Assembly: GCA_009103225.1 (NCBI GenBank) | Contig: RHPI01001946.1 | Span: 209,330-273,329, forward strand | DNA: 64,000 nucleotides | Direction of reading: 5' to 3' | Source of the DNA: Chlorokybus atmophyticus | Taxonomy: Eukaryota; Plantae; Mesostigma and Chlorokybus algae | Part shown: positions 11,934 through 62,434 of the stretch, piece after piece | Numbering within the stretch: the first letter of the stretch is position 1 | How the letters are laid out: every line of letters starts with the position of its first letter | Program-made: the position numbers and the translations under genes | The notes under the pieces: generated by a model | Told to the model about the DNA's origin: nothing | Database searches by the model: none | The model's input: only the letters and a program-made list of their open reading frames with translations

Positions 11934-12005
11934 TATATGAAGTATTATTCTCACCTTGGTTCGTGGCACTAATTGATATATATATATATGTATATATATG
12001 TGTGT

Positions 12006-12052
<47 letters not shown>

Positions 12053-14898: not shown

Positions 14899-15347
14899 CC
14901 TTCCTCCTCCTGCTCCAACACCCTTCCTCTCCCACACAACCCTAACACCGCAAAACACGCCCCAGGTAACACCAGCTCCACAGCGCACGGCCGCCGCCTA
15001 GTCAGCACAACACCTCTCTGCAGCAGTATTACGCTCTTGACGTCGTGATTGTCGCCGCCGCAGCCGCCGTCAGCATCAACGATAGCAGCGATGGCCGGAC
15101 TGGGTCCAGGACTACACGCAGCTCAAGACGGCTTGTCACGAACCCTCCACGTGTATCAACGAATTGTTACTTGCCCGGTCGCCTTATCATAGTGCCGGGC
15201 AGTGCCCGGCGGGCACTGAGTGCCCCCCCGTTATGGTTTGCAATGTCATTTCACGGACGCAACCTGTACATAAAGTCCCGCACGCGATCAGACTGTGGCA
15301 GGTAAGCCTTAGCTAAGCCTCAAGGGCTGGGAACATAAGTGGGTAGC

Positions 15348-23330: not shown

Positions 23331-25258
23331 CTGCTGATTGCTATGTGTGCTGATGGACACAATCAACAACAATTGTTACGAAGGTTGCGGGGTAAGCTGT
23401 GGAGCATGCAAAGACAGGCTTATGACACAAACTACAAATAAGTGTATAACATGATGCTGCAACGTTTGGGGATTGGCAGCGCAAGCAATGATAGGTAAGT
23501 ACAGGTGAGTTTTGGGTAAGTACGGTGTGGGGAGCAGATACATTGCTCGCATACATGTTAGGCCACTGCCTGCTAGACTCGCTACTTCTCACTTAGGATG
23601 CTACTATGCTACTTGTGCTAATGCCCATGCTATAGACCACAATGCCTACGTGATGCACTGCCCTGCTGTGCAATTCACACTAGTATTGCACTGGGCGTTC
23701 CAACTGGACAATGCAGCCGTTGTGAGTGCCAGCGGAGACACTAGCGGCTACTAAAGTATTGGTGGCGGCTGCTGGAGATGTGGCCGTAGCTGTTGTTGAG
23801 TCCAAGTCGTGCTTGCTGCTGCGTGGTGTGAACGCGGCTGACGCGCTCCTGCTGGTGCTGGCAGGTGATCCCAAGTCCTTGCTGCTGTTCTCCCCCTCCC
23901 CTAACCCCCTCCCTTTCTCGCTTGCTGCTAGCTAGTGCATATAGCTAGCATAGAGGCCCCCCCATCCTATGTTGTTGCAGCTGCTATGCTGTATGCTGCA
24001 TTGGCTCTGCTGCTTGTACTGCAATCTACCTTGCACTAGCTCACGACCCCTCGATTATTGTGTCTTATACATCGTGCACAGCAGATACATATTGTGGTCA
24101 AATCTGATTGCATTGCGCATGGTAAGCTACGATGTGGCTGGCTCTGTAAGAAGATTGTTTCTGTTGTTCAGAGCCACTTTACAAGCAAACATACGTAAAA
24201 AATCCAAAGTGGCTGCTATGAGCCATCTGATTTTAGTGTTCCGGTTGACAATCGGAACACTAACAAAGGCGGGGCTGTGATTGAGCCTACGATCGCGGGG
24301 GCTCACGGGCGCTGGATTAGATCACGCCGGTCGTGGAGAGCTTCATTGACTGTTTGCAAGCCCCTTGTCAATGATGTGTGTGTGTGGGTTCAGGGACCCA
24401 TGATTACACCAATGGACCCTCAAAAGCTGCGTGCATGGCGATGACGCGTCCACGTCAGTTAGGCTGCGTCCCCGCGGCCCATCCTGACACGTCCGATCGA
24501 TCCGCTTTCCTCTTCGCGCGCTGCAGATCGGCGCCAAGCTAGGTCCCAGGACAGGCCTCGTTTACCAGAGTCGACGGATTCCACATGAAGTCGTGCTTAG
24601 GACCAGCGTTCCAACCATATCTCTGCTTTAGGACGGACAGTAGATTCATCTTAGGCTGGCGACGGTTCGGCCAGCGTACATCAAAAGCAAGAGCCAACCG
24701 CACTCCGACGCAAACTGCCCCAGTCACCAACTTCTTACGCGAAAGGACGAATGAATCACAGCTGATTCACGACACTGCCTCAGCCCCTGATTTAGATCAC
24801 AGCTCAATCGATTTCCTACCAAGCCTCCGAATCACTGAATCTCCGTCACTGAGTCGAAATCTCCCGATGCACTGAGTGAATCATCGACTGAATCAGTTGA
24901 AGTGGTGACTGAGGCACCAGCCTAAGGCGCAACGGCCAACTAAGCGTCCACAAGCAGCCGCGGTTGCAACTTGCTGTGGTGGTGTCGTTGAGCTCGGCGG
25001 CGGCGGTGTTTGAGGCGGTGGCGGTCGTGTGTTGGGTTTGCTTTGCTAGATAAACTCAGCTGCGGCGTCAAACAGAGTTCTGTGTGATTGTTTTCTTGCT
25101 GGGTTGTTGTGCGGTTGGAAGCTCCGGATCGGAGAATAGTGTACCGACAAGCCTTTGAGGGTGAGGGAGGCTTCGAGGGTGCCAGCTGCGTACAAGCGTG
25201 TAAGGGCTTTGAGAGCCTTCTACAGAGTTCATCAAGCTCTTTCTCCACCCTTCCAGAC

Positions 25259-25669
25259 ATGGCGCCCGCGTTGGTGCTGGCGCAAGGGGCATCGCAATTG
25301 CTGGCGCAGGGGGCGCAAGCTGCGGGGCTCGTTCTTGGCGTGATGATGGTGCGGGAGCAGCTCATGCCACAGGTAAGCAATCGTTTATTTCACTCGTTCG
25401 TACCATGCTCGCACCACTTGCTAGGGTTTCAACCAACCTTCTCTATTCCACACACGCAGCCTCCAAGGATGAGCAAGCGAGACAGCCATGTGCCGAGCTG
25501 CCCCAGGTGCAACGGGTCTGGTAGGGAAGAATGCTTCTGCAACCGATGGTCTGATGGCGACGTCGGCTGCAGCAGTTGTGTCGGTACCGGCATGACGGCC
25601 TGCCGATCTTGCGGTGGCAGCGGCACGGGCAGACCAATACCTGTCAAGTTGAGAGTTGACCGGAGGTAG
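25259..25669 (+). CDS. Small DnaJ-like cysteine-rich Zn-finger protein (At5g43260-like, no J domain)
   Basis: Exon 25259-25372 is a hydrophobic leader (MAPALVLAQGASQLLAQGAQAAGLVLGVMMVREQLMPQ). The exon from 25460 gives CPRCNGSGREECFCNRWSDGDVGCSSCVGTGMTACRSCGGSGTGRPIP, i.e. four CxxCxGxG-type motifs. The last codon may instead be spliced to ~25752-25755. Confidence 0.88.
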   Translation: MAPALVLAQGASQLLAQGAQAAGLVLGVMMVREQLMPQVSNRLFHSFVPCSHHLLGFQPTFSIPHTQPPRMSKRDSHVPSCPRCNGSGREECFCNRWSDGDVGCSSCVGTGMTACRSCGGSGTGRPIPVKLRVDRR

Positions 25670-41500: not shown

Positions 41501-42716
41501 TCATAGTCCCCTGAGCAAGCCGCTTTTGTCTATAGACAGCAGTTCCCTCGGGCTCAGTCCCAGCGAGCTTAGCGCCAGCGAGTTGAGCGCGGACCCGAGG
41601 TCTCCCAGAGCCGAGGCCGCCAGCGACTGCCGCTGGGGCTTCGGCCCGCCCAACGCGCCCCCTTGCTGCTCCTCGCTCACACGCTGCAGCACGCCACCAT
41701 CCGACACGAAGTCACGCCACGACTCCTGCGCCTCCAACCTCTCCCGCATCTGCCAGCACGCAACCGAACTCAGTAAGTGCCCATGGGTCGGTGTATATGA
41801 CGCGCACGGGGTTTGCACATGCATTGAATGCACGAGTAAACAGCCTGTGTACAACACATAACACACAAGCTGGCACACATGTACACCTAAGACGCTGGAC
41901 TTAGTTACTGTTTCGCATGTTGTTTTGGCGTAGGCTATACTCAACATAGATATGTCCAAGCAAACCACCCTCAGCACTCTTCAATTCGCACAAAGCCTTT
42001 GATGGAGCCCATGCTCAATACGCAATTGCAGTATGAAATATACTTAACGCACACTCACGACCAGCGTAAGCAACATGCAACAGTAAGTGCACATTACATA
42101 CCTGTACATCCACCTTGGCCGCGGCTGCAATGGCATTCGCCAGAGCCATGGCGCACCCGAGATGGGCGGGTCGCTTCCCAACAGGCAAATCCACGCTGTC
42201 GCGAGCCACATCAGCCAGGCGCACATGGAGGCCTCCCCCATCCATGTCGAGGAGTTGTTCCCACGCGGGAGGTGAGGGCGATGATGAGCCAACCTTTGCG
42301 TCCTCATATCGAGGGGCGAACGCGGCCTCAAGCACGCAGCACGCCGGCACGTGAAGGCAGTTGTTCAAAGGGTGGGCGAAGACTAGCTGCGCGATCTTGG
42401 GTAGAGCTCCACTGGTGAACACGGCGTGGTCGATGTGCTTGTTGCCGCACGCTAATAGCCGCTCTGCAGTCGTGGCCAGAGCAATGGTGGGCGTTTACGT
42501 ATAAACACCCTGCATCCAATGAATGTGCATGTATGCACATACATATGCAGACATGCACATATAGCACACATATTTATATGTACGTGGACAGCTTCTGTCC
42601 ATGTGTTACATGTTTGTTGTATGAATGCAAGTAACATTGAGCGAGCATGGGAAGAGTTCCTTCACACATGCAATCACATGTGCATGCATGCATGACTGCA
42701 TATGTATGTAAATGTA

Positions 42717-42807
<91 letters not shown>

Positions 42808-45283
42808 GTGTACCTCCAGGTGTGCATACCTGGATATACACTGCATCGTGCACCCACAACACCTCTCTCAACACTCACCAAGCAGCCGCACGACCGCGAC
42901 GCGATGCCTCCCCGCCACCTTTACGATCCTCCCGTCCTGCACGGCTTGCTCCCCTGCCTCCATGCGCAGCAAGGCCGCGAACACGCCGAGGGACTGCAGC
43001 ACCTGCGCCAGCGCGGGCCGCTGGTGAAGCTGCGCCGCCAGGGAGGGCTCCACGGCGGTGGATTGGAGCTCGTCGTCGACGGCGGCAACAACCTGTGCAC
43101 GAACGTGTATATGTTGTGATGGTCAGTGACACGGTTGTTGAAACAGATTGTCAAGTCAACTGGGAAGAGGTTTGCTTCCTTGCCTGGAATACATTGTCAG
43201 CGATTGCGTGTATGTCTGGGCTTGAGCTGTCTATGTTTTGCAGCTGTTCCAGGGCTGCAAGAACCTGGAAGAGGGACATACTTGTTGAAGAGCAACATAT
43301 GTGCACACACGTATATGTGGGTATATGCATACGTGCACACATATTGGTATGCGCCAACAAGGCAAACAGTAGAATTCAATCAACAGAACCATGCCATTAT
43401 CGACTAGGCAACATGTTGCCATGTCATATTATTGTCAAGCAAGCAACCGCGCACTGACCTGTTGCAAAGCAGCAGCAGTATGAGAGGTCGGAGCCCTTAA
43501 AGACGTTGGGTCGCCATCCTGCAATGCACCCGACATCGTCATCACACTTACTCTTGAACCACGCACAGCTCAAACACATGCGTCCTCCCCACCCAACGCA
43601 CCTGATCTGCATCCCACATCAACTCCATAGACGGCTCCTCGACTAGAGCATCAGACCGTTTATGATTTGTTTGTGGCCTTGGCGGAGGTTCTATTTCTAT
43701 CTGCATAAGGGTTGTTATAAGCGTGTAATGTTCCAGTTTTTTCAAGCATGCATACAGCAAACACAGGTACAGGTACCTGCAATGACTTGCGTGTTTTACA
43801 CAAAGCAGCAAGAGCGATCTTGCCCTCGTCTGTAGCCACGTTGCCCGCAACATTTACACTTATCAAGTCGGGAGCAGCGCCATTGGCGAGTGTTGCAGCT
43901 AAAGCCTGTGGGCAACAGTCGGTTATAGCAAAACCATCAACACTCACTCTCAGCCGACAAAGTGAGGTACCATGGTCATGGCCATGATTCGTAAACAAAG
44001 CTCATCAACGTTGAGAAAGGCTGTGTACATGCATGAGACCATTGTTCACGCTAAGCTGATGGTGCTAGCTTGTGCTAAGTGCTATTTGTAACACAGCAAA
44101 GCAACCAGGTCCAACCAACGCACCAGCAACCAATGTGTTTCGCTTGCACATTCTCATCAGCACTGTAGGTCACTACGGATAAGTGTACATGTGTGTATGT
44201 GGAGTGCACACGTAACACAAGCTGCAAAAACGCACCTGCAGCACCGCGTCGCTTATTGAGTTGTAGGACAGATCTAGTGAGATCACCACGCTCTTGCTGC
44301 TGAGTGCATCCACCAACTGCAAGCCGCCAGTCACTCAGGAACGAACATGTGCACATGCTTCGCAAGAAACACAACAGTTGTCAGAAAAAGTACCTTTCTT
44401 GCACGCTTGTCATCGAGTCGACAGTGCGCCAGCTGCACCCACATTGAATCTTCATCGCTACGCCGCAACGCTGCGAGTGCCGCATTATACCTGCAAACAC
44501 CATTGGATGAACACAACTGATTTTTCAGTAGGGTGTCAACATCATCATAACCAACAACATCATGGTAGTCGTCACGGTTGGTATACTACCTTTGATCAGC
44601 CTCATGCGCAGGCACAGCATTCTCATCGACCAACTGGTACTCAGCTGTTGAAGAAGAAGTTGTTGCTAACTCTGCTGCGGGGGCTTCTTCAGCGCCACCT
44701 TTGGCCTGTTGTTTAAGTAAAGCACTGATCACTAGCCAGCTGAGAGCTTGCACTGTGCACGACACACACAGCTTGCTGTGTACTCAACAAACTCTACGTA
44801 TACAAGCAAGCTCAAACCCTTACCGTAGCTGCATTCTTGCATGCACGAGCTTACTGCATGCATGTGCAGCTGCTACACCACCACAGACAACAACCAAACA
44901 AGCAGAAACAACTGGCATGCGAGCTCGCACACCCTTTCGATGGGTATGTTTCTAATGTACAAGCATTGCATAAGTGCTCCTGTTGTAATGTACAGCAAGC
45001 AAGTGTAATTGCTCCTTATGCGGGATCTGAACAGTGAAACTGTCCATGCATAGTATAGGCCCAATGTGCGACCTAGCAGCATTTGTGTAGCAATTGTGGT
45101 CACGCATGCAAGCACCTTCTTCTTCTTCTTTTTTTTCTTCTTCTTGCCCTTGGCCTGCTGGCCTGGAACGGCAGCAGCATCCGCAGCTGTGCCAGCGGCG
45201 GTGGCTTCGTCCCCTCGCACGTCCTCCTCGTCCTCCAGCTCCGAGCCAGACTCAGAAGCGTCAGTCTCCTCCTCCGTTTCCAT
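41501..45283 (-). CDS. Protein with acidic/poly-Lys N-terminus, RNI-like LRRs and a C-terminal SAPS (SIT4/PP6 regulatory subunit)-like region
   Basis: METEEETDASESGSELEDEED...GKKKKKKKKKK. LRR-like VISLDLSYNSISD and LISVNVAGNVATDEGKIAL. SAPS-like GRHRVAVVRLL, LVFAHPLNNCLH, RPAHLGCAMALANAI and WRDFV...LGGPKP. Not all exon joints were checked. Confidence 0.7.
42715..42812. repeat. (TATGTG)~16 hexanucleotide microsatellite (intronic)
   Basis: Perfect tandem array seen directly; it explains the HIHIHI/CMCMCM/YVYVYV artefact ORFs. Confidence 0.97.
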
Positions 45284-45802
45284 GTCCACCAAGTCCACAC
45301 CAACCCTCCCTCGCACAACCACCGCCGGCACCTGCACCGCCGCCGCCGCTGCCGCCACCGCCCTGGCCGTTGATCACCTGATCCATATGGGCGGTTCTGG
45401 TTTGTTGAAGTCCGGTCGAGTAAACGTGATTGAGTTTTCCGAAGACACTTGATCCGCTTTGCAGACATTGGGGTTTGCATTAGGGTGCATCAGTGTAGGC
45501 ATTCTCGTGCATGAATTGAGTAGATCCAATGCACTTTTAGACGCAACGCAAAAGGCAGTCCTTACCTGTACACCAGTGCCAGTGGCTTAGGTACTGTGAG
45601 GACATTGAAACGTTCATGCGCACCTCGCGTTGGGCCAATTAACTTTTATTTGTCCATTTGCCGCCACAACGGTTTATGTAATGCATTGACCTTGAGGCAG
45701 TTTTGACCGCCGATATATACCGTAATTTGTCAAATATCTCCCCTTCCCCACCACACACAAGATGCAGCTTCCATCTTTTGTACATACAACACCTGATTGG
45801 GA

Positions 45803-45985
45803 GGGGGGGGGGGGGGGGGGGGGGNNNNNNNNNNNNNNNNNNNNNNNNNNNNNNNNNNNNNNNNNNNNNNNNNNNNNNNNNNNNNNNNNNNNNNNNNNNN
45901 NNNNNNNNNNNNNNNNNNNNNNNNNNNNNNNNNNNNNNNNNNNNNNNNNNNNNNNNNNNNNNNNNNNNNNNNNNNNNNNNNNNNN
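45803..45985. other. Poly-G tract and assembly gap (Ns 45825-45985)
   Basis: Seen directly in the sequence. Confidence 0.97.
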
Positions 45986-46939: not shown

Positions 46940-49900
46940 TCACCATGTTTTCATCTGAACAGCAGGTCCCAGCGCAGCACCTGAGACACAAGTCTTGCAC
47001 ATGAGTCATTGTTGACGACAGATCATTTGCCAAATTCTGAGTCAACACACAAACTTTGTCTTCATAACCCGCTTACGTGTGGGCCACGCAATTGGCTGAG
47101 TCTTCCATGTTGGGATGCCGCTGAGTGTCGCACATGGCGGCACATGAAAGCGGAACCAACGCGTCTTCACCTCGTCACATGGGTTGTCAACTGACACGCT
47201 GTAAGTCAACTCCCAAGTGCTTGAGGAGGGATCAAAGTCCGCCTGCAAGCAGGAAGCACCTCAGTTGGAATCCAGATATGGGCTTATCGGTCCAAAGGCA
47301 TGCACTATGAGCACAAACATGCAAGTACATGCATGCACACACTGCAGTGTGCACAGACACGCGGAACTTCGCGCGCGCGCACACACACAAGCGCAGGTGT
47401 GCCTTTTAGCACACGCACGTGCACATGCACACGCTGACAGTCTCACTGGTACTGCATGCAATGCGAAACAGACAAACAACTGCCTAGCTGGAGTAACTCA
47501 CTGACCACAACACATCGCCATTACCTGCCAGAAGTCTTTGCCATGCACGGCCTGGTTTACCACAGTCCAGTCCTCGCACCCGTCGACGCGCGTCTCCAAT
47601 TTCGGGTTCTTGAAGCCGGTCGCGCCGGCGAAGGTCATCGCGAGGTAGCCCAGGCCGCCGGTCACCGAGAACCTGGCGTGGTTGGTCTCATCAACCTGCG
47701 AGTGGCAAACAAACATCATCAGATTGACGGACCTCATGATACACGTATGTGACAACTTGATCTACCTGTATCATTAGAGGACACTGGCGAAGGAGTTTGC
47801 CCTTCTGGACATCAAACTTTGGCGTGTTGAGCGCTACTTCACGGTACATCAAGCGCCAGCTGTTTTCCATTTTTTCAAGGGCAGCTTGCAAGTTGGCATT
47901 GGTTCCGTAATACTCGTTGCAGAACTTAGGCAGCATGATCTGTGCCCCAGTACACACGCATGTCAGCTGTTGACATGTATCAAGCATGCAGTGTTGGCCA
48001 AAATGGCAGCCTTGAATACCTGTTCAATGATGCAGTCAATGTAATCGCCGGCCTTCAGGCAAGTGATTGAGGGTGGAGGCAACACCTCTATGATGGAGAC
48101 CTGGCCGTTGGGTGCATTTGTGCCGTGTGTGAACAAGCCTCTCTCTGCGCAAGCATAGGACAAGAGCGTAAAACACACGCACAAACAAGAACGCACACAT
48201 GGACACGCCCACACACTACACTGCGAGAAGCGTTTCTGGTAAGAGAGTGACACGCAAGCACGCTCGTGCGCGCACACAAATGCACACACACGCTTGTGTG
48301 CGCAAGTCCACAACACACATGTATGCAATGTGTACCGGCCATATGTGGGTTGGCAGGCTTGCCGTCCAATACCGCACTCCAGTCGGAGATGGCAAACCCG
48401 CGTGAAGCATCAGTGTGACCTTTTCCCTTGCAACTGGGACTCTGCCAGTGGGATGGTACGCCACTCACCCAACAATGGAGCTGCAAAACAACACATCACA
48501 TTCACCTACAATCACTCTTACCTCTGTGAATGAAACCCAGTTCTTCTTTCCTTTAAGCTCATGGTGTTGCGTCCGGTACCCGTCTTTGCCATTCACTGCA
48601 AACAGAATGCACTCAGTAAAGAATACATGCAACATAACAACAATCACACAAACAATCATACTCGTCATCAGCATTACACGACTCCGGAATATGCTCTCAA
48701 TTGTCATCATCAAGCATGTGTACCTTGACCAAGTTCGCTGGTCCATTCACGGATGAGTCCCTTCTCGTCACCGTACGCAAAATGGTGATTGTAGCCCCAA
48801 GCGTAAGTTGGAGTTCCCATCTACTCGCCACAGTAGCTCAGTGCAATAAGCCACATGCGCAGAAATATACCTACATAAAACAATGCGCGTTTTTGTGACA
48901 AACCTGCCAGATGGGAAAGCGGCGGAACTTTACATCAGAGACCACATCGATACGGAGGTGATAAACAGCACGCGCAGCATCGTCCGAGCGCGCTATGCAT
49001 GCGGTGTATTGGAGCCTCAGGTTGTTGTCTTGAGACTTGCCCGAATATGTCGTCTACATAGAGTTGAGTTTGGTTGCATGCATGCGGCAGATGTTGTGTA
49101 CGTGTGCACATATCAACTTCAGTATCCACCTCAGTCAAGAGAGGTCCCTGCCTTTTACGATAAGTGCGCATCTGAACATTGAACTGGCGCTGCGGCGAGC
49201 CTGTTTCGATCGAACAAAAATCGGCTCCGCCAACATTTTGAGTCCACCCAAACTTCTCCCTCTTGCCCTGTGACAAACAGTGTTTTACACGTTTCACCAA
49301 AAGCCTACATACAATATACCCAACATAACAGCACCTCACCTTGCTGCCGAGTATGTACAAAGGCCGCATGTCCAACACTGCCGCCCGCGTGGCACGCCCC
49401 TGATCGGGCTCATAGCAGAAGTTCTCACCCCAACACCTTTAAAATGTGAGGTCATTGACCAACAATCATAAGTGCTCACGAGTGCGCACGAGCGTGAGTA
49501 TGTGTGTTTGTGTGTGTGTGTGCAAGCGCACGTGTAAGTTTATGTATGCATGTGCGTGTGTGTACAAGTATGTGTATGTGTATGTGTGTGCGCACACGTG
49601 CACATGTGCACGAGCACACACGTACGAGATGGCGGCCTGGTCCCATTGCGTTGTGGGCATCGCGTTGGTGAGAGCCAGCTGCACGTGCGTGGCGGTTGGC
49701 GCCCCGCCCCAGAAGGCGTTCACCGTCGTGTACACCATCGTCCACGTCGCCCCAGCCGGAATCTCCAACGCAACCAGTCCCCTGTACCACTTCGGGTTGG
49801 AGTCCCAGTTCTTTGAAACCTACGCACCGCATTGTGAGTTTGTTAAAGCGTGCGTGCATGTGTGCGGGCACGCATCTGTCAGCCTACAAGTCACTGAACA

Positions 49901-52872
49901 TGCGCGTGCACGGACGCATGTGATAATGTCATTGCTTACAACCATGTTCAAACTTAATGACAACTGTGGCATCATCTATCTTTGCCTTGCCTGTATGGGT
50001 ATGCCAATGGGGTTGAGATCAGTGTCATGGAGGGTTGCCAGGATGCCAATGATGAGGAAGATGTCTTTCGTCTTGGTGAAACACAATCTCACGATGCGGG
50101 TTTGATCGCTTGGGTTTGACACCGTCACCAGCACGCGCTCGATGCGGTTCCAGCGTGGGTCCCCGAGCGGCATCTGTCTGCAGAGACAAGTTGGAAGAAA
50201 TGAATTTGAGTGTTGGCAGAATCAATATTGCAAAGCATGCATGCACCTACTTGTCGTTGCGAAGCACGATTTCATGCCAGCCTTGAGCTTCCACATATTT
50301 CACTGGCAGGTCACACACCTCCAGAGGCATTGTCTGCAGCAACAACAAGGTTGATATATAACCAAAGCTATATCTTTGTCAATCGCTGGGGCGTGCACAT
50401 GCACGCACACGTGCGCAGCCCCGCGCTCACATACATGCACACTCAAGGGCATGCACGCGCGCACACACATACCTGGTCAGCCTTGACTTTAATGGGTGTG
50501 CTCAAATCATTCAAACCCTTCTCAGCTTGGTTGAAGTACGCCACTAGCGTCACCGACCGCTGAGTCATAGGCAGCCAACTGGGCACAGAGCAATCATCAC
50601 CGAATACACAACACTCACCCAACACACACACACCCACCCACACCACAACACCACACAGATAACATACCTGCCCTCAGGCCTACTGGTAACAGTCCCATCC
50701 TCGACCGTTGCATCGCACGAGCCCGCTATAGTGAAAGCAGAACCGAGGCCAGGTGCGTTCAGCTTTATGAATAAATGTGTCTCGGCGCAGTCGCCGTGTT
50801 GGGGAGTTGCGTGAAGCGTGAAGGCCGCGCGGTCGGGCCAAGAGGAGACCTCGATCGAGGAGCAGTGCATGGCAGGGGCGCCGGCTGTTGATAGACATGT
50901 TGTAGGTGTAATGGATGAGTGGTGAGACGGTCAGCATAAGTGACACGGGTGCTTGAATGTGCGCGTGTGTGCGTGTGCACATGCGTGTGTATGCATGCAG
51001 GTGCGCGTGTGTCCAACATGCCTGAATATGTGCGTGAGTGTGTGTGCATGTATGTATGACCGTACTTGACCATGTGAGGGAGTCGAAGATGCGACGGTTG
51101 AACCAGCGGCCATGCTCAATGAGCCTGTTTTTCATGTTGAAGCTGCCAACAGGCGCACACAAGCAGCACACGTTCAGTATGTGGTACGGGAATCACTTCA
51201 AAGGGCAAATCCAACAAAGCTCCAGACACAACTCACTCGCCACACGTGCCGGTCGCAGTGTATGTAATCCCGTTGTGTATCATCCCAAAGGTGATGCTCG
51301 CGTCGCCTTGGCACCCTTTCTGGATCATGTCATTGCCAACATTGACAGCAAACGCCTCTGCAAACACCCAAACTGTTAAGCCACCCCACAACACATACCC
51401 AACAAACACCCATCTCAGTCAACTAACCAGACACTCGCTGCGGCAGCGCCCCAAACTTTAGTAGTTCGAGCGTGTTGTAACGGAGTTCGAAGCCGTAGCG
51501 GCTGCTTTGGACCGCGACGACGAGGTTGTTTTTGTCGCGCTGCCCATTCTTCCAATACATGTAAGAGTAGTCGGCCACAGATGCCACCGCCGAGTCCGGT
51601 ATGCACTGTTTTCCCGTTGGCCCGGGCCTGTGGAAGAAAGTATACTAGTTATTACACAGGACGAAAGAAGCATGCTTTAGCCGTTGGGACTGAGTGACTG
51701 CAGGAATGGAATGCTTAATTGGGTGAATGCTGGACTGATGAGTGCGTGTGTGCATGTATGCATGAACTAATAAACGAGTGACCACATCAAAGACCACATG
51801 GACAAACGAGAATCTGACTTTTGGACACGATCTATCAAAGGCCTCGTTAAACAGCAATCAAGGCAGTTAGATAAGACGGGCACAAGGGGTTGGCATGCAG
51901 TTGTGCTTGCACCAGCGTCCCCTACAGTATGCTGTCTTGACGCACATTACGTGTTGTGCGCTCAGTTGCAGCTTGCATATGTGGGGAGTCATTCACTGAA
52001 GGTCACGCACCCGCACCATCACGCATGTGGCACTATCCAATGACGATCATGCAAGTTGCTTGCATTCAAATTACGAGCCCACTATCTGTGTGCATGTTAT
52101 CAATCCAAGTTCAGTTCTGTGGGATTGACATCTCTTCATGCACAGTTGGCAAGCATTGTGCTTTGGTGTGCCGGACACACAACAACAGTGTGGCTGTGAT
52201 GAGGGCACAACTTCCTCAACTTCCTTTCATTCTCACAAAAGTGCAGTGCTGAAAATCAAGCAAGCAGACATAGCACAACCGCGAAGCTAAGTTCAACTGC
52301 AAAGATCATGAGATGCATGGCAGCATGCATGCATGCATTCGCATGACATTTCACGTCATGCAACATGCTCATCTCACATACTGAGCTAGCATTGGCTTGG
52401 CAAGCAGGAGAAACCCTTGCATGCACCGTTGGCAGCTGACTGTGCTTGCATAGACCACACACATATCTGCAACATTCTTTCGAACTTACCTCTTCCCAGG
52501 CTCTCCTCCCCCAGGCCTGTGCGGCTTCTCCTCCTCTCCGCCTTCATGGCGCCGACCACCACCACCCTGTCCACCCTGTCCTCCTCCTCGTCCACCCCCA
52601 CGCCCGCCTCCTTGTCCACCGCCTCTCTGTCGTCCTCCATGCGCTCCGCCGTCGTTGACACAAGTCTGGTTGTCGTCGCTAACCAAGCTTTTCAGCTCAT
52701 CTTTCAGTTTATTTTTCAGCCAGTCCATTGCGGGACACTCCTGCGTCTGCGCCTCGGCGGCGACGCCTGGAAAGAGGTCGCCGGCGATCAGGACGACAAC
52801 GACAACAATGCCAGCAGCAAAAACAGTAGTGTCGCTGTGGCACTGACTGCGACAGCGTCTTCGGTATTGCAT
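46940..52872 (-). CDS. Copy C: uncharacterised ~900-aa secreted/anchored protein, ~20 exons, Gly-rich leader; apparently intact
   Basis: Exon 1 is MQYRRR...AAGIVVVVVLIAG (signal/anchor) plus a Gly-rich tract. Later exons give DYSYMYWKNG, LIEHGRWFNRR, WPDRAAF, VSKNWD, WGGAP, WDQ, WGENFCYEPDQ, GWTQNVGGADF, RSDDAARA, GGLGYLAMTF, DQAVHGKDFWQ, ending AALGPAVQMKTW* (TGA 46942-46940). Joints checked by hand stay in frame. Confidence 0.85.
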
Positions 52873-53119
52873 ATTGTTGTATTCCTTGCCAATTCCAGCT
52901 CGCATTTCACGCATGGCATGCGCGCCGTTTCTGCCACGGCGTACAGGTGTCACGTGAGATCCATCATGCAAACAAGGACTACTTTTGCATGTTGCATAGT
53001 TGTGTGACACAACTTGCGTCCCTCTTGTTTTGGATCGGAGGGACACAACTTGCTTGTTTGCATTGGCTCTTGTAGAAGGCAGGCAAAAAGCATAGGATTA
53101 TAAGTAGATATGCAACTTG

Positions 53120-54950
53120 ACATGGTATACAGTAAATGGCTGTGATGTACGGATGCGATCCTTTGGGGGCTAATCAATAAAATTTAATAAGGCAATTGAT
53201 GTTAAGTGCATACAAGCCGTTACGGCAGCCAGGGATCTGGGCGTGATACATAAGAATAGAAGTAGCCATAAATTCCGTCACGGTCTTTTATAGCTTGGAT
53301 GGCCGGACCTCTGTTGTAACACAAGCGAACAACCAAAGGATAGCACAAGCACGTGATGAGGAGTACATGCACCCACTTGTGTATGCTTTCAAGCAGCTCC
53401 ATTGAAGGATATATGTATAAAACAAGTCAATGAAGCATACTGCTATGGCGTGTTACAGTATCTGACTGCTTTTAACTTGCATTTTTACGAATTTAAACTT
53501 AAGACAGTCAATGTCCGACATGGCATGTCCCCCATGCTGCTACTGATACACAACACTGCAACTCCATACAATACCTACTTCTTTTTTTACATGCATTATT
53601 GTGTCTATCTACATGTGCAGCTAGACATGATATACATGTATATTACACAAAAGCTCTTTTTGTATTCTTCTTGTTAGTATACTTGTTAAGCAGGATTTAA
53701 AGAGTGACAAAGTTATGCATGACTCTTGCACACAGTGCAATTGTGAAGATTAATGTACACTTACCACGATAGTCTCAGGGTAGGCTAATGACATATGACA
53801 CAACACAAATGATACATTGTAGAGTAACTACTCTACAATGTATACACACTCATCAATTTATTATGCGAGCAATATAACATGGTAAGCAAGTTCCTTTTTA
53901 TGGGAACCTGCTTACTATTGGTATAATATACTCACATATAATATACTCGTACATACATATGTTCGGTCACACAATCGCCGATGAGTTACAACAAATACGC
54001 GACAACTTGGCTCGCACGTCTAAATTTTAAGACAACCATATACGATTACACCACATGCAAGTCAAGGCTGCCTTCACTTGCTCCTTCAACTAAAACTTTG
54101 ATCCACACCGCCGATAATGCCGCACGCGTGTACTCGCTCATGAAAGATTTTAATGGATGAAAATCCCTTCCACCAGTGTTTCTCCACTCGCAACTTTTGA
54201 AATCAACCCGATCGCATATATATAATCCAAGTGACTTCAATGTCCAAATTACGCTTCCGCAACTCATGTCACAGTATTGAGTACGCTTCCTCTCACTCGA
54301 TGACATTCTATCTACCTTCCCATCACAAAATATGCTCCCACAAGCATGACCAATTACGTCGCGCCTACGAGCAGGCCACAATCTGTTATGCCCTTATCTG
54401 GAGTAACTTACTGCAGGTAGGGGAGTTAAATAGTCTCGGGATAGTATTCCGAAACAATCCAATTCAAGCTGCTAAGCGCGCAAGTATAGCATGTAAGTAA
54501 TGTTTATGAGGTTGGGTTACTTATTGTATTATACTACTCAAAGTGCCAACCGTTGGCACTATAAGATGACCTTGTATATGTGTGCATCATGATATAGACA
54601 TGACATTGAAGGCATGTTAGCATGCCATGAAGCGTACTTGACACTGATGTTGATTACGCAAGGCATTGCATACCAAATGAGCAGCAGTTACAGGAATACA
54701 ACATGTGATACAAGATGATATGCAAGCGCAATGGTACACTCACACTATTTGATGTATATTTACACAACATGTAGTAAATGTTACAATGTTAGTTGAACAT
54801 TGTCGATTACGCACACATGGTTTATGGATTAGTCCGCCATTGTTGCCACTGCCATGTCCGGGATGCACTACTTGGCCGGCCCAGGCCTGCCAAGGAAGAT
54901 ATAAAAGTTACACGGGACAAACATGATGGACAAGCTGGTTTGAGACTGCT
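53120..54950. other. AT-rich block between the two duplicated exon-1 units; probable inserted-element relic
   Basis: Composition shifts to AT-rich, there is no spliceable gene, three palindromes are present (53812-53843, ~53882-53915, 54542-54560), and the block truncates the orphan duplicate. Confidence 0.35.
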
Positions 54951-54959
54951 AATAATAAA

Positions 54960-56330
54960 ACAACACTCACTCGAGTCAATAAGCAGTTAAGTGACTGCAT
55001 GATGGGATGACTGGATGTACTCAAGTATGTGTGAGAGCATGCTTGCATGCACAAACGCAGTAATGAGTAATCAGATGCAAGAACAAGAAGAAACAAAAGG
55101 TCTTCTCCATGCATACATGCGGGGACGCCAATGCCGAACGTCATCACAAGCCTTGTATTACAGCAGCTGATAGGCTGGGCACAAGGGGTTGGCGTGCAGC
55201 TATGCATGCAGCGGTTGGTTACACATGCCATCATGACAATCACAGGGTGCAGTACATGTCTCGTCTAGTATCATGTGTTTTCGTAGTGTCACTCAGTGAT
55301 GGTGCAGCACGCAGATGTGACTGTGCGAGTTGCTTACATTATGAAACTCCTACCGATTATTGCGTCTTGCATGCACATTGTCAATGAAAATTCAGTATGA
55401 ATCCACACAGCTGCGTGTATGCGCTCTGCAAGCAATGCGTATTGGTGTGCCATACACACAACAGTGTTTCTGATGATGGCAAACCTTGCTATTACTTGAA
55501 CAAGAGTGTAATGCTAACTACATGAGCATGCCAATGCAGCTCAAGCTAGACGCTCAGCTGCAAAGGTTATGAGAAGAGTATGGCATCAAGCATGCAAGCA
55601 TGCCATGGCACGACATGTCACATCGTGCATACTTCACATCTACAGCTTACATTCACTTGACATCAAGACAAGCGTGACAAAACCTTGCATGCTTGATGCC
55701 ATGCAGGTGCGCCTCTATCCGGCTTACCTCTTGCCAGGCTTTCCTCCACCAGGCCTATGCGTCTTCTCCTGTCCACCTTCATGGTGACCACCTCCACCAC
55801 CCCGTCCATGTCCTTGTCCATGCCCACCTCCTTGTCCATCGCCGTTATGTCGTCCTCCATGCGCTCCGCCCTCGTCACCCATGCTCTTGAAGCATGCCAC
55901 AACCGTTTTGTAGTATCTCAGCCAGAAGAGTACACGGCCTTCGCCTGGGAGGCGACGCCGCGGGGGAGGACGACGACGACAATGCCAGCGGCGGCAACAA
56001 CGATGTCACTGTGACACTGACACTGGCTGTCACAACATAAGCGTCTTTGCTATTGCGTTGCATTCCGTTCCATTTCTCACGTTTTTAGAACGTAACACGC
56101 ATGGCAAGCCATGGGCCGTAGCCCACTGTGCGCCATTGATGCCACGGCGTATAGGTGTCACGATGCCCACTAGGACTATTTATGAATGTTGCATGGTTGT
56201 GTTCTTCCCTTTCGTGGTTTTGTTAATCAGGAACATTGTCGCTAGGGTTGGTGAGAGGGACAGGAGTAAGCACATCACAAAACATGTTCTGTAAAGGCGG
56301 AAGCTGTGTTAAAAGGCATGACAACTTGCA
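54960..56330 (-). pseudogene. Orphan duplicate of copy C upstream region, exon 1 and intron 1 (fourth, 5'-only family fragment)
   Basis: 55724-56070 mirrors exon 1 (AAGIVVVVL..., DEGGAHGGRH..GQGGGHGQ..RPGGGKPGKR|gtaag) with frameshifts and a stop. 54960-55700 matches intron 1 (e.g. GGGCACAAGGGGTTGGC at ~51877 and ~55177). No downstream exons follow. Confidence 0.8.
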
Positions 56331-56705
56331 AATGCGTAAAATAATGAGTTCTTAATCACCATGACTATATGACTTCCTAGTGCAATCTCACGAAGCGCAA
56401 TAGCTACAGACTCACGAGGATGATTTCATTTCGTATGGTTGAAATTTAATTGGTTATGTTTATCAACCGCATTCTTGATGTTGCACCAGTCTCAAATCGC
56501 CGTATGTTTTGCAATTTATATCATGCGTCATTATTAAAGTATAATGTCACATACATATGATATCATTTCGTTTTGTTTCACAGCAGGGCCAATACATATG
56601 ACAAGACTGTTTGCATTAAACTACGACAGAGTAACACAACATCATATGACCAACAATCGCTCACTCAGATTGGTGTTGGTATATAAGCATGTGGGCCCCC
56701 TTTTT

Positions 56706-56707
<2 letters not shown>

Positions 56708-56749
<42 letters not shown>

Positions 56750-56818
56750 TAAAAGCANNNNNNNNNNNNNNNNNNNNNNNNNNNNNNNNNNNNNNNNNNN
56801 NNNNNNNNNNNNNNNNNN
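56708..56818. other. Poly-G tract and assembly gap (Ns 56758-56818)
   Basis: Seen directly in the sequence. Confidence 0.97.
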
Positions 56819-57741
56819 GGGGGGGGGGGGGGGGGCGAAAGGGGGGGGGGACATGCTGTAGTTCGTGTCCATTAAATTGGATTAGCTGGTGATAGGAAGG
56901 TAAGGGAGGGGCAAGCAGCAGGCAAGGCAAGCGCCTAAGCAAAGGATACATATTCTTGAAAGGTCACAAGCAAACATTGATCATCTTTATTGTGTTATAA
57001 CACTGTTATGATAGAATGAAATGTGACAATTGAGCATGAGTTGAGCAGCTTACCTTAGCTTACATCCAGCTTATCAACGTGTACTTTCTTTACCTATCCA
57101 ACATAAGTCATGCCACAACATGCTATGCAAGCGATGATGCAGCCGCAGATTGGTCATATAGCACACGTCTTGAATTGCGCCTCTTGCTGCACGAGTCTCA
57201 TTGCAGTAAGAGTCTTGCATGCAGAGCTGCGTAACATTGGCAGGTAGGCATGCTTTGTTGAAGTAACGGTGCTCCATCTACTACTCACATCATTTAGGTT
57301 TACAATTGACTCAACCACCTGCTTCACACAAGTTTCTCTAACACACCATGCAACAAATAAAGTTTCACACACTTCGTGGACTGCTTCAGATACAAGTCAA
57401 CGACACATTGGTATTGCGCTACTCAGCTCGCATGGCATATAACTTTTATGTTGTGTCACAAAAAGTAGCAAGCCTGAACAGGTGCGACACACTTAGGAGG
57501 CGTATATAAGCCGTTCATATAGGCAGGAAGAACCCTATCAGTGCTATCTCCCAGCCGTGCTACTCACACCCTAAGCACCAGGAGGCTTGCACACTAAGAA
57601 CGAACAGACGCAGAAGGCGCATGTAAGCCAAATATGTAGGCAGGACGAACCTGTCTGTCCTTCTATGTTGCATTTTCCCTCCCACATAACTTACACTTTG
57701 CCTAGCCACAAGCAGGCTTGCATTGTTGACGAGGAACAACA

Positions 57742-60700
57742 TCACAGTGTTGTCGCATCCACCGCAGGTCCCACGGCAGCGCCTGCAAGGCTCACATCAG
57801 TAAGCAGTTATTGCCAAGTTACTGCCTCAGTCACTGTGCTTACGTGTTGGCCATGCGATCGGCTGCGTGTTCCAGGTTGGAATGCTAGACAGTACTGCAG
57901 CTGTCGGCATAGAGAAGCGGAACCAACGCGTCTTCACCGCGTCACCCGCATTGTCCACAGACACGCTGAAGGTCAACTCCCAGGTGCTGGATGAAGGCTC
58001 AAAGTCCGCCTGCACGCAGTGCAAAAGGGCTCAATTCAAATCCTCCAATTGTGTTTTGAACTGGTCGGATGCAACACTGTTGAACGCATGCAATATGGGG
58101 CGTTTGAGCTATATGTGTACATGCTTATGACGAAAGTCTAATCCAAGAAGCACTGTGCGCAAACATGTTTCTTGCAATGCGGTTGGACCTAACCAATACC
58201 GCTAGTACCTGCCAGAAGTCTTTGCCATGAATAGACTGGTCTACAACCTGCCAAGAAGTTCCGTCAAAGCTCATTTCCAGTTTCGGGTCCTCGAAGCCTG
58301 TCACGCCTGCGAAGGTCATTGCAAGGTAGCCGAGGCCGCCGGTGACTGAGAATTGCGCGTGGTTGGTATCATCAACCTGAGGAGTGGTGGATGTTAGGTC
58401 AAGTATCACTGATGTTGAGATCAGGCAGGTCAACGGTAACTAACCTGTATCATGAGAGGTCTCTCGCGAAGCAGCTGGCCAGCTGTGATGACATAAGTCG
58501 GCGTGTTGAGCGCGACTTCGCGATACATTAGGCGCCAAATGTTCTCCCACTTGAGAAGGGCGTTTTGCATGTTGACGTTCGGGCCATAATAGTCAGTGCG
58601 AAACTTGGGCAGGGCGACCTGTATAAGCCACATTATGCACATTATGCACATTATGCACATCAATGCTGCACACATTTGTACGGGACTGACTCAACACAAG
58701 ACACGACACACAGGCGTGTTGGTGTGCGCGCACAGATGCCTGCAGGCACCCACCCACGCGCGCATGCACACATGATTGTGCCACACCTGTTCAATGATGC
58801 AGTCGATGTAGTCACCAGCCTTCAAAGCATGCACTGAGGGCTGCGGAACCACCTCAATTATAGAGACCTGCCCGTTGGGCGCGTTGGTGGCGCCTGAATG
58901 TATGCCGCGTTCTGTAAAGGACAAAGTGCGTGAGTACGCCCACACACTGACGAATGACTGCGATGACTGGCTCAAGCACGAACCCGCCATGAATGGGTTA
59001 GAGGGCTGGCCATTCAGCACCGCACTCCATTGGGAAATGGTAAACCCGCGCGAGGCATCGGTGGCACCAACACCCTCTACGCTGGGGCTCTGCAAGGCGA
59101 TTGAATATCACGATCAGCATGGACAATGCAAAAACAGCAACATGTTCAAGTCAGTGTCTTTGCCTTTCACACCGAGATTACTTCACGGTGATGTTGTACC
59201 TGTGTAAATGAGACCCAATTCGTCTCGCCCTTCAGCTCATAGAACGGCGTTCTGTACGCATCTTTGCCGTTCACTGTTTACCAATTCTGTCAGGTAAGAA
59301 TGTGACATCCACGACCACATCTTTTACTGAGGCGCTAAGCGACATCACATGCCTTGGCCCAGCTTGCTGGTCCATTCAAGGAGTAGTCCAATCTCATCAC
59401 CATAAGCAAAATGGTAGTTGTATCCCCAAGAGTAAGTCGGGCTTCCCATCTGCATAGCAGAGCATTCGAGTCACAGTACGGGACAACGTGTAACTCCATC
59501 ATTACATATGGGAATGCAGTGACAGCAAACCAACCTGAAAGATAGGAAAGCGGTTGAATGTCACACCGGAGACCACATCAATGCGAAGGTGATACACAGC
59601 CCTCGCAGCATCATCGGAGCGCGCTATCAACGCAGTGTACTGGATCTTCATGTTGTTGTCTTGAGACTTGCCCGCATATGTTGTCTGCACGTTTGGGAAA
59701 AGGTGGTTGTGTGTGTTTGTGCGCTTGTGCATGTGTGTATGTGTACGTGTATGCAAACTGACTGCTGACCTCCGTCAAGAGAGGTCCCTGCCTCTTACGA
59801 TACGTGCGCATCTGCACATTGAATTGGGTCACTGGCGAGCCGGTATCGATTGCAGCAAAGTCGGCTCCGCCGACGTTCTGCGTCCACCCAAACTGCTCCC
59901 TCTTGCTCTAAACAACAAGTAACACATCAGCTGATGCCTTTACACAGTACTCCCAAGTGATATTCAACAGCCAGCACCAGCTCACCTTGTTGCCAAGCAC
60001 GTATAGCGGCCGTGTGTCTAGCACAGCGGCCCGCGTGGAACGCCCCTGATCAGGCTCATAACAAAACGTCTCGCCCCAAGCTCTGCCAAGTGTGTGCATG
60101 TGCTCGTGCGCATTTGTGTCTGTGAGCCCGGGCGCGTGCGCATGTGTGTGTGGGCGCGTGAGCGAACACTCACTCTCACATGTGCGCATGCACACGCGCA
60201 TGTGCATCAGCAGACAACAATGCTTCCACACAAGCACGCGCTTACGAGATGGCGGACTGGTCCCACTGCGTATTGGGCATCGCATACGTGAGCGACAGCT
60301 GCACGTGCGTGGCAGCGGGTGCCCCGCCCCAGAATGCATTCACCGTCGTGTACACCATCGACCACGTCGCCCCTGCCGGCACCTCCAATGCAACCAGTCC
60401 CCTGTACCACTTTGGGGAGATGTCCCAGTTCTTTGACACCTGCATGAAAGCACTACCCATAATGTCGTTGTTGTTGATGATGACGATGATGACGACTCTG
60501 TGCCTGTATAGGGATGCCGATGGGGTTAAGTTGGGTGTCGTGGAGGGTCCCAAGGATGCTGATAATGAGAAATATGTCTTGGATCTTGGAGAAAGACAGC
60601 CGCACAATGCGGGTTTGATCACTCGGGTTCGACACTGTCACCGTCACGCGCTCGATGCGGTTCCATCTCTCATCCCCAAGCGCACCCTGGCTGCGTGCAA

Positions 60701-62434
60701 CATAACATTCATTCGGCTGACCCGACAATACATAGCAAGAACAACACACGTTCTCATCATTGCGCAGGGAGATGTCGTGCCAGCCTTGCGCTTCCACATA
60801 TTGCACAGGAAGGTTGGAGACAGCCATTGGCAAAGTCTGCAAGACACGCACTTGTGTAAGTGCAAACAACACCCAACTGCGCTGCACTTGTGTTTGTACG
60901 GTGCGAGCAAATGCTGCGCAGTAAGCTTGCACACAGACTTGTATGTGTAACAGAGGACAGTACCTGGTCTGCGTTGACTGTGATGGGAGTGCTCAGATCC
61001 GTTGAACCACGCTCTGCATCATTGATAAATGCCACCAAAGTCACCGAGCGCTGTACTAATGGAGGCCAACTGCAAAGGTCAATTCCTTCAACATGACGAC
61101 AATGGTAATTTTTGATGATGATGATGATGATATACATGATATACGTGCCGGGCGGCCGGCTAGTGACGGTCCCGTCACTAAGAGAGGTGAAGCTGGAGCC
61201 CGCGATGGTGAAGGTGGAGCCCATACAAGCAGCACTTAGCTTGACAAACATGCGCGCATCCGCAGAGGTAAAGCCAGTGTCTTGAGGGGTGATCTGCAGG
61301 GAGAATGCCACCCGGTCGGGCCAGACAGATATCTCGATCGCCGAGCGGTTCATGGATGGGGCGCCAGCTGATAGTAAACAAGATCAATAATGTTCACAAG
61401 GCGTGCGAGGTTGTGCATGTGTGAGTATCATACATGACCATGTGAGGGAAGTGAACATGCGGCGATTGAACCAGCGGCCGTGTTCAATAAGCCTTGAATC
61501 GAGCAAGAAGCTGCAGAAAGCACACCAGAATGAGCACATGCAAGGACACATTACCGGCACCGATGCATTATAGGCAAAGTAACCAAGTCAGGAGTTATGG
61601 CTTACTTCCCAGATGTGCCGGTGACGGTGTATGTCACACCGTTGTATATGATCCCAAAGGTGATGCTGGGCGTGCTGGGCAGCCCGTCTTCAATCATCTC
61701 ATTGTCAACATTCAAAGCATATGCCTCTGCGTTGCAAACAACGACCAGTCAGTCAAACAAACCACGCACACGTGTGTATGCATGTGAGTGTACGCACACG
61801 CACACGCACGCGCACATGCACGTGCACGCGCAAGCGCGCGCATAGACACATAAAAAAGTAAGGCCTGCGCATGCACAGAGAGTGCCCTTATTAGCTGTGT
61901 GGTTGCCGGTCAACTTACCGGAGACGCGTTGCTGAAGACCCCCGAATGTCAGGAGCTGAACCTTATTGTAGTTGAGTTCGAACCCGTAGCGGCTGGTCTG
62001 GACAGCAACGACAAGGTTGTTGGGGTCCCGCACGCCGTTCTTCCAATACATGTACGCATAGTCCGCCACTGTCCCCACGGCCGTGTCGGGGATTGACGTT
62101 GTTGGCGCCACTGCTGCTGTCACTGCCTCGGATTGCGCCAACGGCAGCGGCGTATTAGGCTGTGGACTGCAAGCAACTCATGAACTGACGCGCATTGCAG
62201 GCATGGCTGAGGCAATCAATATGCACGCGAGTGAGCTTGCACGTACTGTCGGAGGACTTCAGCACTGAGAGTCATCTCGAGGTTGTCGTTATCGGACATG
62301 GTGCCGTTGCCTTGTGCTTGTTGCGCTCTCACGGGTGATGTGGCAAGAGCAAGGAGGGAGAACGCAATGAACAGAATGTGCGTTTGTGTTATCATGACAG
62401 AGTCCTGCGGAGTCCGTTGCAGGATGAAAGCCAT
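57742..62434 (-). CDS. Copy D: uncharacterised ~900-aa secreted/anchored protein, ~20 exons; apparently intact
   Basis: Exon 1 MAFILQ...ILFIAFSLLALATSPVRAQQAQG (signal-peptide-like with an AxA cleavage pattern). All downstream exons are collinear with copy C (DYAYMYWKNG, EHGRWFNRR, WPDRVAF, WGETFCYEPDQ, GWTQNVGGADF, DYYGPN, DQSIHGKDFWQ), ending AAVGPAVDATTL* (TGA 57744-57742). About 900-930 aa by hand count. Confidence 0.87.

Follow-up and report, generated by a model that had tools for sequence, protein, structure and literature searches.

Introduction

How did a green alga come to carry intron-rich genes whose protein products read like those of bacteria, and what might these proteins do? 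The question is raised by a stretch of 64,000 nucleotides from Chlorokybus atmophyticus (assembly GCA_009103225.1, contig RHPI01001946.1, positions 209,330 to 273,329 of the forward strand; hereafter the window), in which a first-pass annotation, made from the letters alone, had described a local family of genes with about 20 exons, each for a secreted or anchored protein of about 900 amino acids. The window holds three related copies of such a gene, two of which (C and D) are intact, and by sequence these belong to the family of the H18 fucoidanase of the bacterium Luteolibacter algae. The reading that we favor, to which we assign a probability of roughly 0.7, is that they are tandem nuclear genes descended from one acquired bacterial gene, and that they encode extracellular, all-beta proteins whose most likely activity would be the endo-cleavage of a sulfated anionic matrix polysaccharide.

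Results

Two intact genes with 19 exons each

The copies were located by tblastn and six-frame comparison and by blastn within the window, which placed A on the plus strand and C and D on the minus strand. Gene models were then built with a custom protein-to-genome spliced aligner (BLOSUM62, GT/GC-AG introns in three phases, frameshifts and stops disallowed) under the guidance of six proteins, namely two algal and three bacterial full-length relatives and one fucoidanase. The full-length guides, algal and bacterial, led mostly to one exon chain with few differing junctions, and the fucoidanase guide covered the C-terminal exons only. Manual checking and refinement then dealt with the 5' exons and with exons 14 and 16. 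The resulting genes are as follows.

62434-57827, minus strand: gene D, 19 exons, 900 amino acids, intact, N-terminal signal peptide MAFILQ...ILFIAFSLLALATSPVRA followed by QQ
Gene D exons, minus strand (spliced alignment and manual refinement): 62434-62243, 62126-61919, 61726-61606, 61510-61434, 61367-61145, 61069-60964, 60836-60750, 60686-60504, 60439-60246, 60082-59986, 59907-59770, 59684-59535, 59449-59353, 59273-59200, 59089-58984, 58911-58787, 58618-58445, 58376-58209, 58009-57827
52914-47042, minus strand: gene C, 19 exons, 980 amino acids, intact, transmembrane anchor VFAAGIVVVVVLIAGDLF
Gene C exons, minus strand (spliced alignment and manual refinement): 52914-52490, 51627-51428, 51357-51237, 51142-51066, 50884-50668, 50578-50473, 50333-50251, 50177-49991, 49819-49626, 49436-49340, 49267-49130, 49053-48904, 48820-48724, 48595-48522, 48441-48336, 48144-48020, 47939-47766, 47695-47525, 47242-47042

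Neither model contains an in-frame stop, which bears out the earlier proposal of two intact tandem copies. The estimates of about 20 exons and 900 amino acids were near the mark, the count being 19 exons in genes for 900 and 980 residues, and the genes are indeed rich in introns, at 18 per gene instead of the 19 or so first suggested. These introns measure 63-862 nt and have GT-AG borders throughout, save for GC donors after exons 8 and 13 of D and exon 8 of C; many introns of the family genes are rich in CA/TG repeats. Exon lengths are identical between C and D in 11 of 19 cases and differ by a multiple of 3 nt in five more. Exons 7 and 8 show differences of 4 nt in opposite directions and add up to 270 nt in each copy, and for this reason the junction between them is probably misplaced in one of the two models. 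Exon 1 shows no homology between the copies, and intron 1 differs in both phase and position. The D model is least certain at its exon 1/2 and exon 7/8 junctions and at the exon 13/14 boundaries. A phase-2 first intron with a stronger GTACGT donor was also tried for D, and as it offered no in-frame AG acceptor the phase-0 model was retained.

The two proteins are 73% identical over 823 amino acids. Across 820 codons the synonymous divergence (dS) is about 1.1 and the ratio of nonsynonymous to synonymous divergence (dN/dS) is 0.16, values which indicate that the duplication is old and that both copies are under purifying selection. The window also contains the remains of two further copies.

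54832-56202, minus strand: fragment B, a decayed copy of C exon 1 and its upstream DNA, not a gene
5057-13423, plus strand: pseudogene A, the third copy, inverted, with 69-83% nucleotide identity to D

Copy A, which the first-pass annotation had placed at 5035-13423, is a pseudogene, as proposed there: its exon 8 is split (6895/10497) by an insert of 3.6 kb (6896-10496), and an in-frame stop lies in the stretch matching exon 9 of D, which is uninterrupted in D itself. An assembly gap (5653-5780) falls between the matches to exons 2 and 3. The 5' fragment noted earlier is also real, since 55723-56202 on the minus strand matches C exon 1 and its upstream DNA by blastn (77% over 171 bp and 74% over 84 bp), with stops and a frameshift in its translation; at 54832-54888 tblastn found a weak trace of the beginning of exon 2.

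A sequence family spread across bacteria

In a set of 1.84 billion cluster representatives, which stand for about 15 billion proteins, a profile built from one exon of 65 amino acids matched 80 proteins, or about 70 once repetitive ones were removed. The top two were EukProt proteins of C. atmophyticus itself, P0002 (709 amino acids, apparently truncated) and P0003 (1010 amino acids), which share about 57% and 38% identity with D and are thus paralogues and not the window's own genes. The other matches whose source was looked up were all bacterial or metagenomic (Sumerlaeota, Hydrogenedentota, Parabacteroides, Planctomycetaceae, Lentisphaera and Omnitrophota), and no eukaryotic source other than Chlorokybus was found among them. 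The first-pass annotation had recognized no plant or algal family and had pointed to a widespread eukaryotic family as the result that would overturn its reading; no such family was seen. When P0002 served as the query, in order to find nearer eukaryotic kin or the proteins predicted from the window itself, nothing came up but P0002 and a single JGI protein.

Full-length relatives are found in bacteria. D aligns to residues 31-824 of the 824-amino-acid bacterial protein P0105 with 39% identity, and P0003 matches bacterial and metagenomic proteins of 800-900 amino acids at E 1e-157, with 38% identity over 82% of its length. The C-terminal 55% of P0003 also matches LamG-containing proteins, including UniRef A0A455R2M4, annotated as 'Fucoidanase', of L. 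algae (P0144; E 2e-93, 33% identity). Compared directly with this enzyme, D is identical in 211 of 553 aligned columns and C in 238 of 630, or 38% each. The similarity to bacteria of the Planctomycetota-Verrucomicrobiota-Chlamydiota (PVC) group, whose absence had been named as a second ground for rejection, is present. With one genome taken for each species of bacteria and archaea, a pattern scan yielded at least 546 confirmed loci, and among the 79 that were kept Planctomycetota, Verrucomicrobiota and Lentisphaerota dominate. The suggested PVC affinity holds to that extent and is too narrow in that Bacteroidota, Armatimonadota, Hydrogenedentota and Chloroflexota carry the family as well. With the exception of the L. 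algae enzyme and of LamG-domain proteins, all the homologues listed are named 'hypothetical protein'.

The motif string that the first-pass annotation had given for bacterial proteins proved to be almost exactly the consensus of the bacterial homologues, taken from 72 aligned members, ISKNWH..WGGVPAASHAQL..WDQAAIGSWGESICFEPDQ..NVGGADF..RTDD..DYYGPN..GGLGYVP..HGxDFWQ, and LamG fusions (PF13385), mentioned in the same place, do occur in the family. All twelve motifs listed for the algal genes are present in both C and D, in which we read DYAYMYWKNG/DYSYMYWKNG, EHGRWFNRR, WPDRVAF/WPDRAAF, VSKNW, WGGAPAATHVQL, WGETFCYEPDQ, WTQNVGGADF, RSDDAARA, GGLGY and HGKDFWQ. Domain databases were silent on the family: in Pfam, ten stop-free exon pieces of D matched nothing beyond noise below the threshold, full-length P0002 and P0003 had no Pfam match, NCBIfam holds no model for it, and the sequences of the PDB gave no match with either a single protein or the 72-sequence profile. 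In particular, no LamG or concanavalin-like N-terminal domain was matched in Pfam by the D exon pieces, P0002 or P0003. Given their similarity to the L. algae H18 fucoidanase over the conserved C-terminal 550 or so residues, the algal proteins are, by sequence, members of that enzyme's family; because they lack LamG and have an N-terminal module resembling galactose mutarotase (see below), they are placed in a sister subfamily that is LamG-less and built of two supersandwiches.

Phylogeny and direction of transfer

Trees were computed with FastTree from 90 rows and with IQ-TREE from 46 rows (LG+C20 with posterior mean site frequencies, quick search, Shimodaira-Hasegawa-like approximate likelihood ratio test, SH-aLRT, for support). 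D, C, P0002 and P0003 form one clade with support of 99-100 (SH-aLRT 100), branching as (P0003,(P0002,(D,C))). When the tree is rooted on the LamG/fucoidanase subfamily, the algal clade lies several supported nodes (100, 100 and 96) inside the LamG-less bacterial subfamily, a nesting that depends on this root, which is an assumption. The nearest rows by path length are Pirellulaceae and metagenomic proteins.

Transfer from a bacterium to the alga, followed by intron gain and duplication, is well supported and much the best reading of these data, because the family is seen in one eukaryotic lineage against hundreds of bacterial species, its occurrence in eukaryotes being therefore patchy, and because the algal genes carry 18 introns each, eukaryotic targeting signals and eukaryotic neighbors. 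The bacterial acquisition proposed in the first-pass annotation agrees with the nested position of the clade. That no transfer took place, and that the genes are either bacterial contamination of the assembly or members of an ancient eukaryotic family inherited vertically, strikes us as extremely improbable. All close relatives are indeed bacterial, and an unrooted tree alone does not fix the direction of transfer; against this stand the 18 spliceosomal introns per gene with their GT/GC-AG borders, on account of which contamination was rejected, the tandem position of the genes beside eukaryotic ones (Dim1-like and protein-kinase exons), and the lack of any other eukaryote among those matches from the 1.84 billion representatives whose source was looked up.

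Targeting signals and invariant residues

The N-terminus of D, read by eye, is a classical signal peptide. That of C starts Arg-rich, continues into a hydrophobic anchor and is joined to the conserved ectodomain by a Gly/Arg-rich linker, an arrangement that suggests a type II membrane-anchored surface protein. The expectation of secreted or anchored products thus fits both genes, D with a signal peptide and C with a signal anchor. The low-complexity linker (GGRQRGGGQGGGRGGGRGGGQGG..., 52490-52660, minus strand) lies in exon 1 of C directly after the anchor, on what is presumed to be the extracellular side; its composition is odd for a stalk, and a similar run is kept in the decayed fragment at 55724-55900.

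In the 72-sequence family alignment 20 columns are invariant, 19 of which lie between residues 432 and 682 of P0003, the last being W748. D keeps 18 of them and C 19, the only changes being Gly to Ser (two in D and one in C). Three are carboxylates, E541, D559 and D640 of P0003, corresponding to E468, D486 and D567 of D; Tyr and Asn/Gln are also represented, and His, Arg and Lys are not.

59353-60686, minus strand: D exons 8-13, central supersandwich domain, bearing most of the family-invariant residues

The invariant residues of this domain (in D numbering N358, Q399, W404, W410, E468, D486, N507, D567 and Y598) are candidates, on conservation, for catalytic and substrate-binding roles.

Predicted structure

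Prediction of P0003 with AlphaFold2 from a 72-row alignment gave an all-beta model with a predicted template modeling score (pTM) of 0.82. The best Foldseek matches were OpgG/OpgD and GH38 mannosidases, at E of about 1e-6, and alignment with VIA-align gave Z scores of 16.3 to the exo-rhamnogalacturonan lyase of polysaccharide lyase family PL26, 15.6 to OpgD of glycoside hydrolase family GH186, 14-15 to GH38 C-terminal domains, 14.2 and 13.6 to GH174 endo-1,3-fucanases (8jd7 and 9k1g), and 13-14 to PL17 alginate lyases. Prediction of the N-terminal module by itself (pTM 0.77) again gave a mutarotase-like fold, with Z scores of 11.7 to PL26 and 9.3 to galactose mutarotase. The protein is accordingly modeled as a pair of galactose-mutarotase-like beta-supersandwiches, with more beta-strand structure behind them at the C-terminal end. 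GH107 endo-fucanases have a (beta/alpha)8 barrel as catalytic domain. The same holds for GH168 (PMC12534559), and the P0003 model, all-beta and with no alternating helix-strand barrel, resembles neither. The comparison with supersandwich folds of lyases and hydrolases that had been recommended in the first pass thus returned such folds (PL26, GH186 and GH174), and the guess of a carbohydrate-active enzyme is supported and sharpened by the predicted fold, by the fucoidanase homology and by the sulfatase and fucosidase neighborhoods described below.

The fold scores single out no one enzyme family, and two other functions have to be weighed at this point. The proteins could be polysaccharide lyases that act by beta-elimination next to uronic acids (glucuronic acid, GlcA, or galacturonic acid, GalA) of an anionic polymer, given that PL26 heads the structural matches for the N-terminal module as well as for the whole model, that PL17 matches too, and that the invariant set includes Tyr and Asn/Gln. 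Cladosiphon fucoidan, moreover, contains GlcA. So does the Chlorokybus 'pectin' (PMC10953000). We nonetheless consider lyase chemistry unlikely, as the sole characterized relative is described as a fucoidanase, the GH174 and GH186 hydrolases match about equally well (Z 14-15.6), and the family keeps three invariant carboxylates and no invariant His, Arg or Lys. Even less probable, in our opinion, is that the algal proteins have kept the fold, lost the activity and now serve the extracellular matrix in carbohydrate binding or adhesion. Mutarotase-like supersandwiches are in fact non-catalytic accessory domains in GH38 and LacZ, but 18 to 19 of the 20 invariant residues, including all conserved carboxylates, have been retained after long divergence, and dN/dS is low.

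Bacterial gene context

Around 14 bacterial loci of the LamG-less subfamily, the 91 neighboring genes include 11 sulfatases, six GH29 alpha-L-fucosidases, one GH95 enzyme and two SusD-family proteins. In the Algibacter locus the family gene sits with a GH95 gene, an acetyl-esterase-like protein and two sulfatases, and two further loci, from metagenome-assembled genomes, show clusters of GH29, GH95, esterase and sulfatase genes. This context is the signature of sulfated-fucan utilization loci. In one bacterial member, P0007 (1744 amino acids), a natural fusion joins a sulfatase at the N-terminus to the family domain, to cadherin-like and MBG domains and to a type IX secretion tail, which suggests a coupling of desulfation with backbone cleavage within a single protein. 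In another bacterial locus of the fucoidan type (L080), a group II intron-type reverse transcriptase (11895-13361, minus strand; RVT_N, RVT_1 and GIIM) lies inside a rhamnosidase gene, leaving it as two open reading frames.

Other features of the window

Several neighbors of the family genes have a eukaryotic character. An open reading frame at 14587-14988 on the minus strand contains a highly conserved exon resembling Dim1/TXNL4A, the thioredoxin-like protein of the U5 small nuclear ribonucleoprotein (MSYLLPHLHSGWAVDQAILGEEDRVVIIRFGHDWDEQCMQMDEVL...), which points to a housekeeping context, and an exon at 16947-17507 on the plus strand carries the catalytic loop of a Ser/Thr protein kinase (...DFGASK) reminiscent of MAP3K. 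The open reading frame at 25088-25669 on the plus strand has a DnaJ-type zinc-finger motif at its end (CPRCNGSGREECFCNRW...CSSCVGTGMTACRSCGGSG) and probably represents one exon of a gene for a small chaperone-like protein of the plastid type. A long dinucleotide microsatellite occupies 42702-42810, its translation reading (VC)n or (YV)n.

56758-56818, no strand: assembly gap, intergenic, between the 3' end of D and fragment B, with poly-G runs on both sides

Lying 1009 bp beyond the stop codon of D and 556 bp ahead of fragment B, this gap breaks no family exon. Long poly-G runs (5611-5652, 45797-45824, 56706-56757 and 56819-56836) border three of the four assembly gaps of the window and match each other; they look like an artefact of sequencing or scaffolding and not like biology.

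Discussion

We propose that one horizontally acquired bacterial gene was the ancestor of D, fragment B, C and the inverted pseudogene A. The product of D would be secreted by way of its signal peptide and that of C held on the membrane by its type II anchor and Gly/Arg-rich stalk, and both would cleave, internally, a sulfated anionic matrix polysaccharide with sugars of the L-fucose or L-galactose type, with the central domain's invariant carboxylates (in D, E468, D486 and D567) as the catalytic residues. We infer that the algal proteins are active enzymes, that their chemistry is that of hydrolases rather than lyases, and that such a polymer is their substrate. According to papers that cite Nagao et al. 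2018, J Biosci Bioeng 126:567 (PMC8997789, PMC7699409), the L. algae enzyme degrades deacetylated fucoidan of Cladosiphon okamuranus.

A number of points weigh against this proposal. The characterized fucoidanase belongs to the other subfamily and has only the C-terminal 550 or so residues in common with the algal proteins, while the LamG-less subfamily is known from sequence, predicted fold and gene context alone. Lyases (PL26, PL17) and non-catalytic domains (those at the C-terminus of GH38 and LacZ) share the fold just as well. As to the donor lineage, the sister of the algal clade is a very long Lentisphaera branch with a support of 82, and in the D model the donor at the exon 1/2 junction is weak. 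Finally, fucose is not among the sugars reported in the hydrolysate of the Chlorokybus 'pectin' (PMC10953000).

The substrate could be either the alga's own matrix or foreign material. L-galactose is the 6-hydroxy analogue of L-fucose. The 'pectin' of Chlorokybus is a sulfated anionic polymer rich in L-galactose and GlcA which resists every wall hydrolase tried (Rapin et al. 2023, PMC10953000), and this sulfated L-galactose/GlcA 'pseudo-pectin' may possibly be what the enzymes act on. We put forward tentatively, as an idea more apt to fail than to hold, that the proteins are the alga's own endo-glycanases for this polymer, a bacterial enzyme of the fucoidanase type having been recruited, in the streptophyte lineage that diverged first, to loosen the wall or to release daughter cells. 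If this were true, they would be the first enzymes known for the Chlorokybus 'pseudo-pectin' and a eukaryotic branch of a barely characterized glycoside hydrolase family. Somewhat more doubtful still is that they act on foreign polysaccharides (bacterial exopolymers, the mucilage of other algae or soil glycans) in nutrition or biofilm control instead of remodeling the wall. Chlorokybus is said to live on soil and in subaerial habitats among bacteria, and the bacterial family is catabolic and sits in polysaccharide-utilization loci; soil polysaccharides had likewise been named in the first-pass annotation. Speaking against foreign substrates are the several paralogues kept under purifying selection, the anchoring of one copy at the cell surface, and a host wall with an unusual sulfated polymer that has no known endogenous hydrolase (PMC10953000).

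Comparison with known systems

Intron-bearing genes of bacterial origin for carbohydrate-active enzymes are a known theme in streptophyte algae, and in the literature we found no paper that reports a transfer of fucoidanase-family genes to Chlorokybus. The nearest characterized system is the L. algae H18 fucoidanase (A0A455R2M4), also called Fct114. It is secreted and all-beta like the algal proteins, homologous to them over the C-terminal 550 or so residues, with all the invariant residues in common save for the Gly-to-Ser changes and with E636, D653 and D732 in the positions of E468, D486 and D567 of D, and it is found, as are the LamG-less members, in bacteria that degrade sulfated polysaccharides. 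It differs in that a LamG region (PF13385) takes the N-terminal place which a supersandwich module occupies in the algal proteins, and in belonging to another subfamily of the tree; the algal genes differ from it in their 18 introns and in targeting signals of the eukaryotic kind. In a 2025 review it is left unclassified (PMC11943901). Closer in architecture are the 'hypothetical proteins' of 800-900 amino acids from Formosa agariphila KMM 3901, Parabacteroides segnis, Lentisphaera marina and other Planctomycetota, Verrucomicrobiota and Bacteroidota, which belong to the subfamily of the algal clade itself and share the two-module layout over their full length with 33-39% identity; unlike the algal genes, theirs are intronless, often encode a type IX secretion tail, and lie in loci with sulfatases and GH29/GH95 enzymes.

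The remaining comparisons concern fold and substrate. GH174 endo-1,3-fucanases (8jd7, 9k1g) share the beta-supersandwich with the P0003 model and are linked to sulfated fucans, as is the family of the algal proteins, but they are roughly half as large, and PDB sequences that included both entries, searched with a single sequence and with a profile, showed no sequence similarity to GH174 (Fun174A, catalytic D119/E120/E218), so that the likeness is one of fold only. The GH186 beta-1,2-glucanases OpgG/OpgD and the PL26 exo-rhamnogalacturonan lyase, the best fold matches (Z 15-16), have no sequence similarity to the algal proteins and differ in substrate and domain order. In GH186 the supersandwich itself is catalytic. 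GH187 is dominated by beta-sheet and occurs in Bacteroidota, Verrucomicrobiota and Planctomycetota (PMC12534559), and the size of Fun187A of Wenyingzhuangia aestuarii (101 kDa), compared by description only, fits the flavobacterial members of about 870 amino acids. No Wenyingzhuangia name stood among the 120 matches listed in a search from the Algibacter homologue, and our family may or may not be identical with CAZy GH187.

Set beside these systems, the family is almost unstudied, with one characterized bacterial enzyme, no entry in Pfam, NCBIfam or the PDB, and hundreds of 'hypothetical proteins' in utilization loci of the fucoidan type. The bacterial result has a value independent of the alga, as it marks out the LamG-less subfamily as a strong candidate: its members would be a new group of sulfated-fucan-degrading enzymes. 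The algal copies, for their part, are concrete candidates for the missing enzymes acting on the unusual sulfated wall polymer of Chlorokybus, and offer an experimentally tractable eukaryotic member with which to define the active site of this fold.

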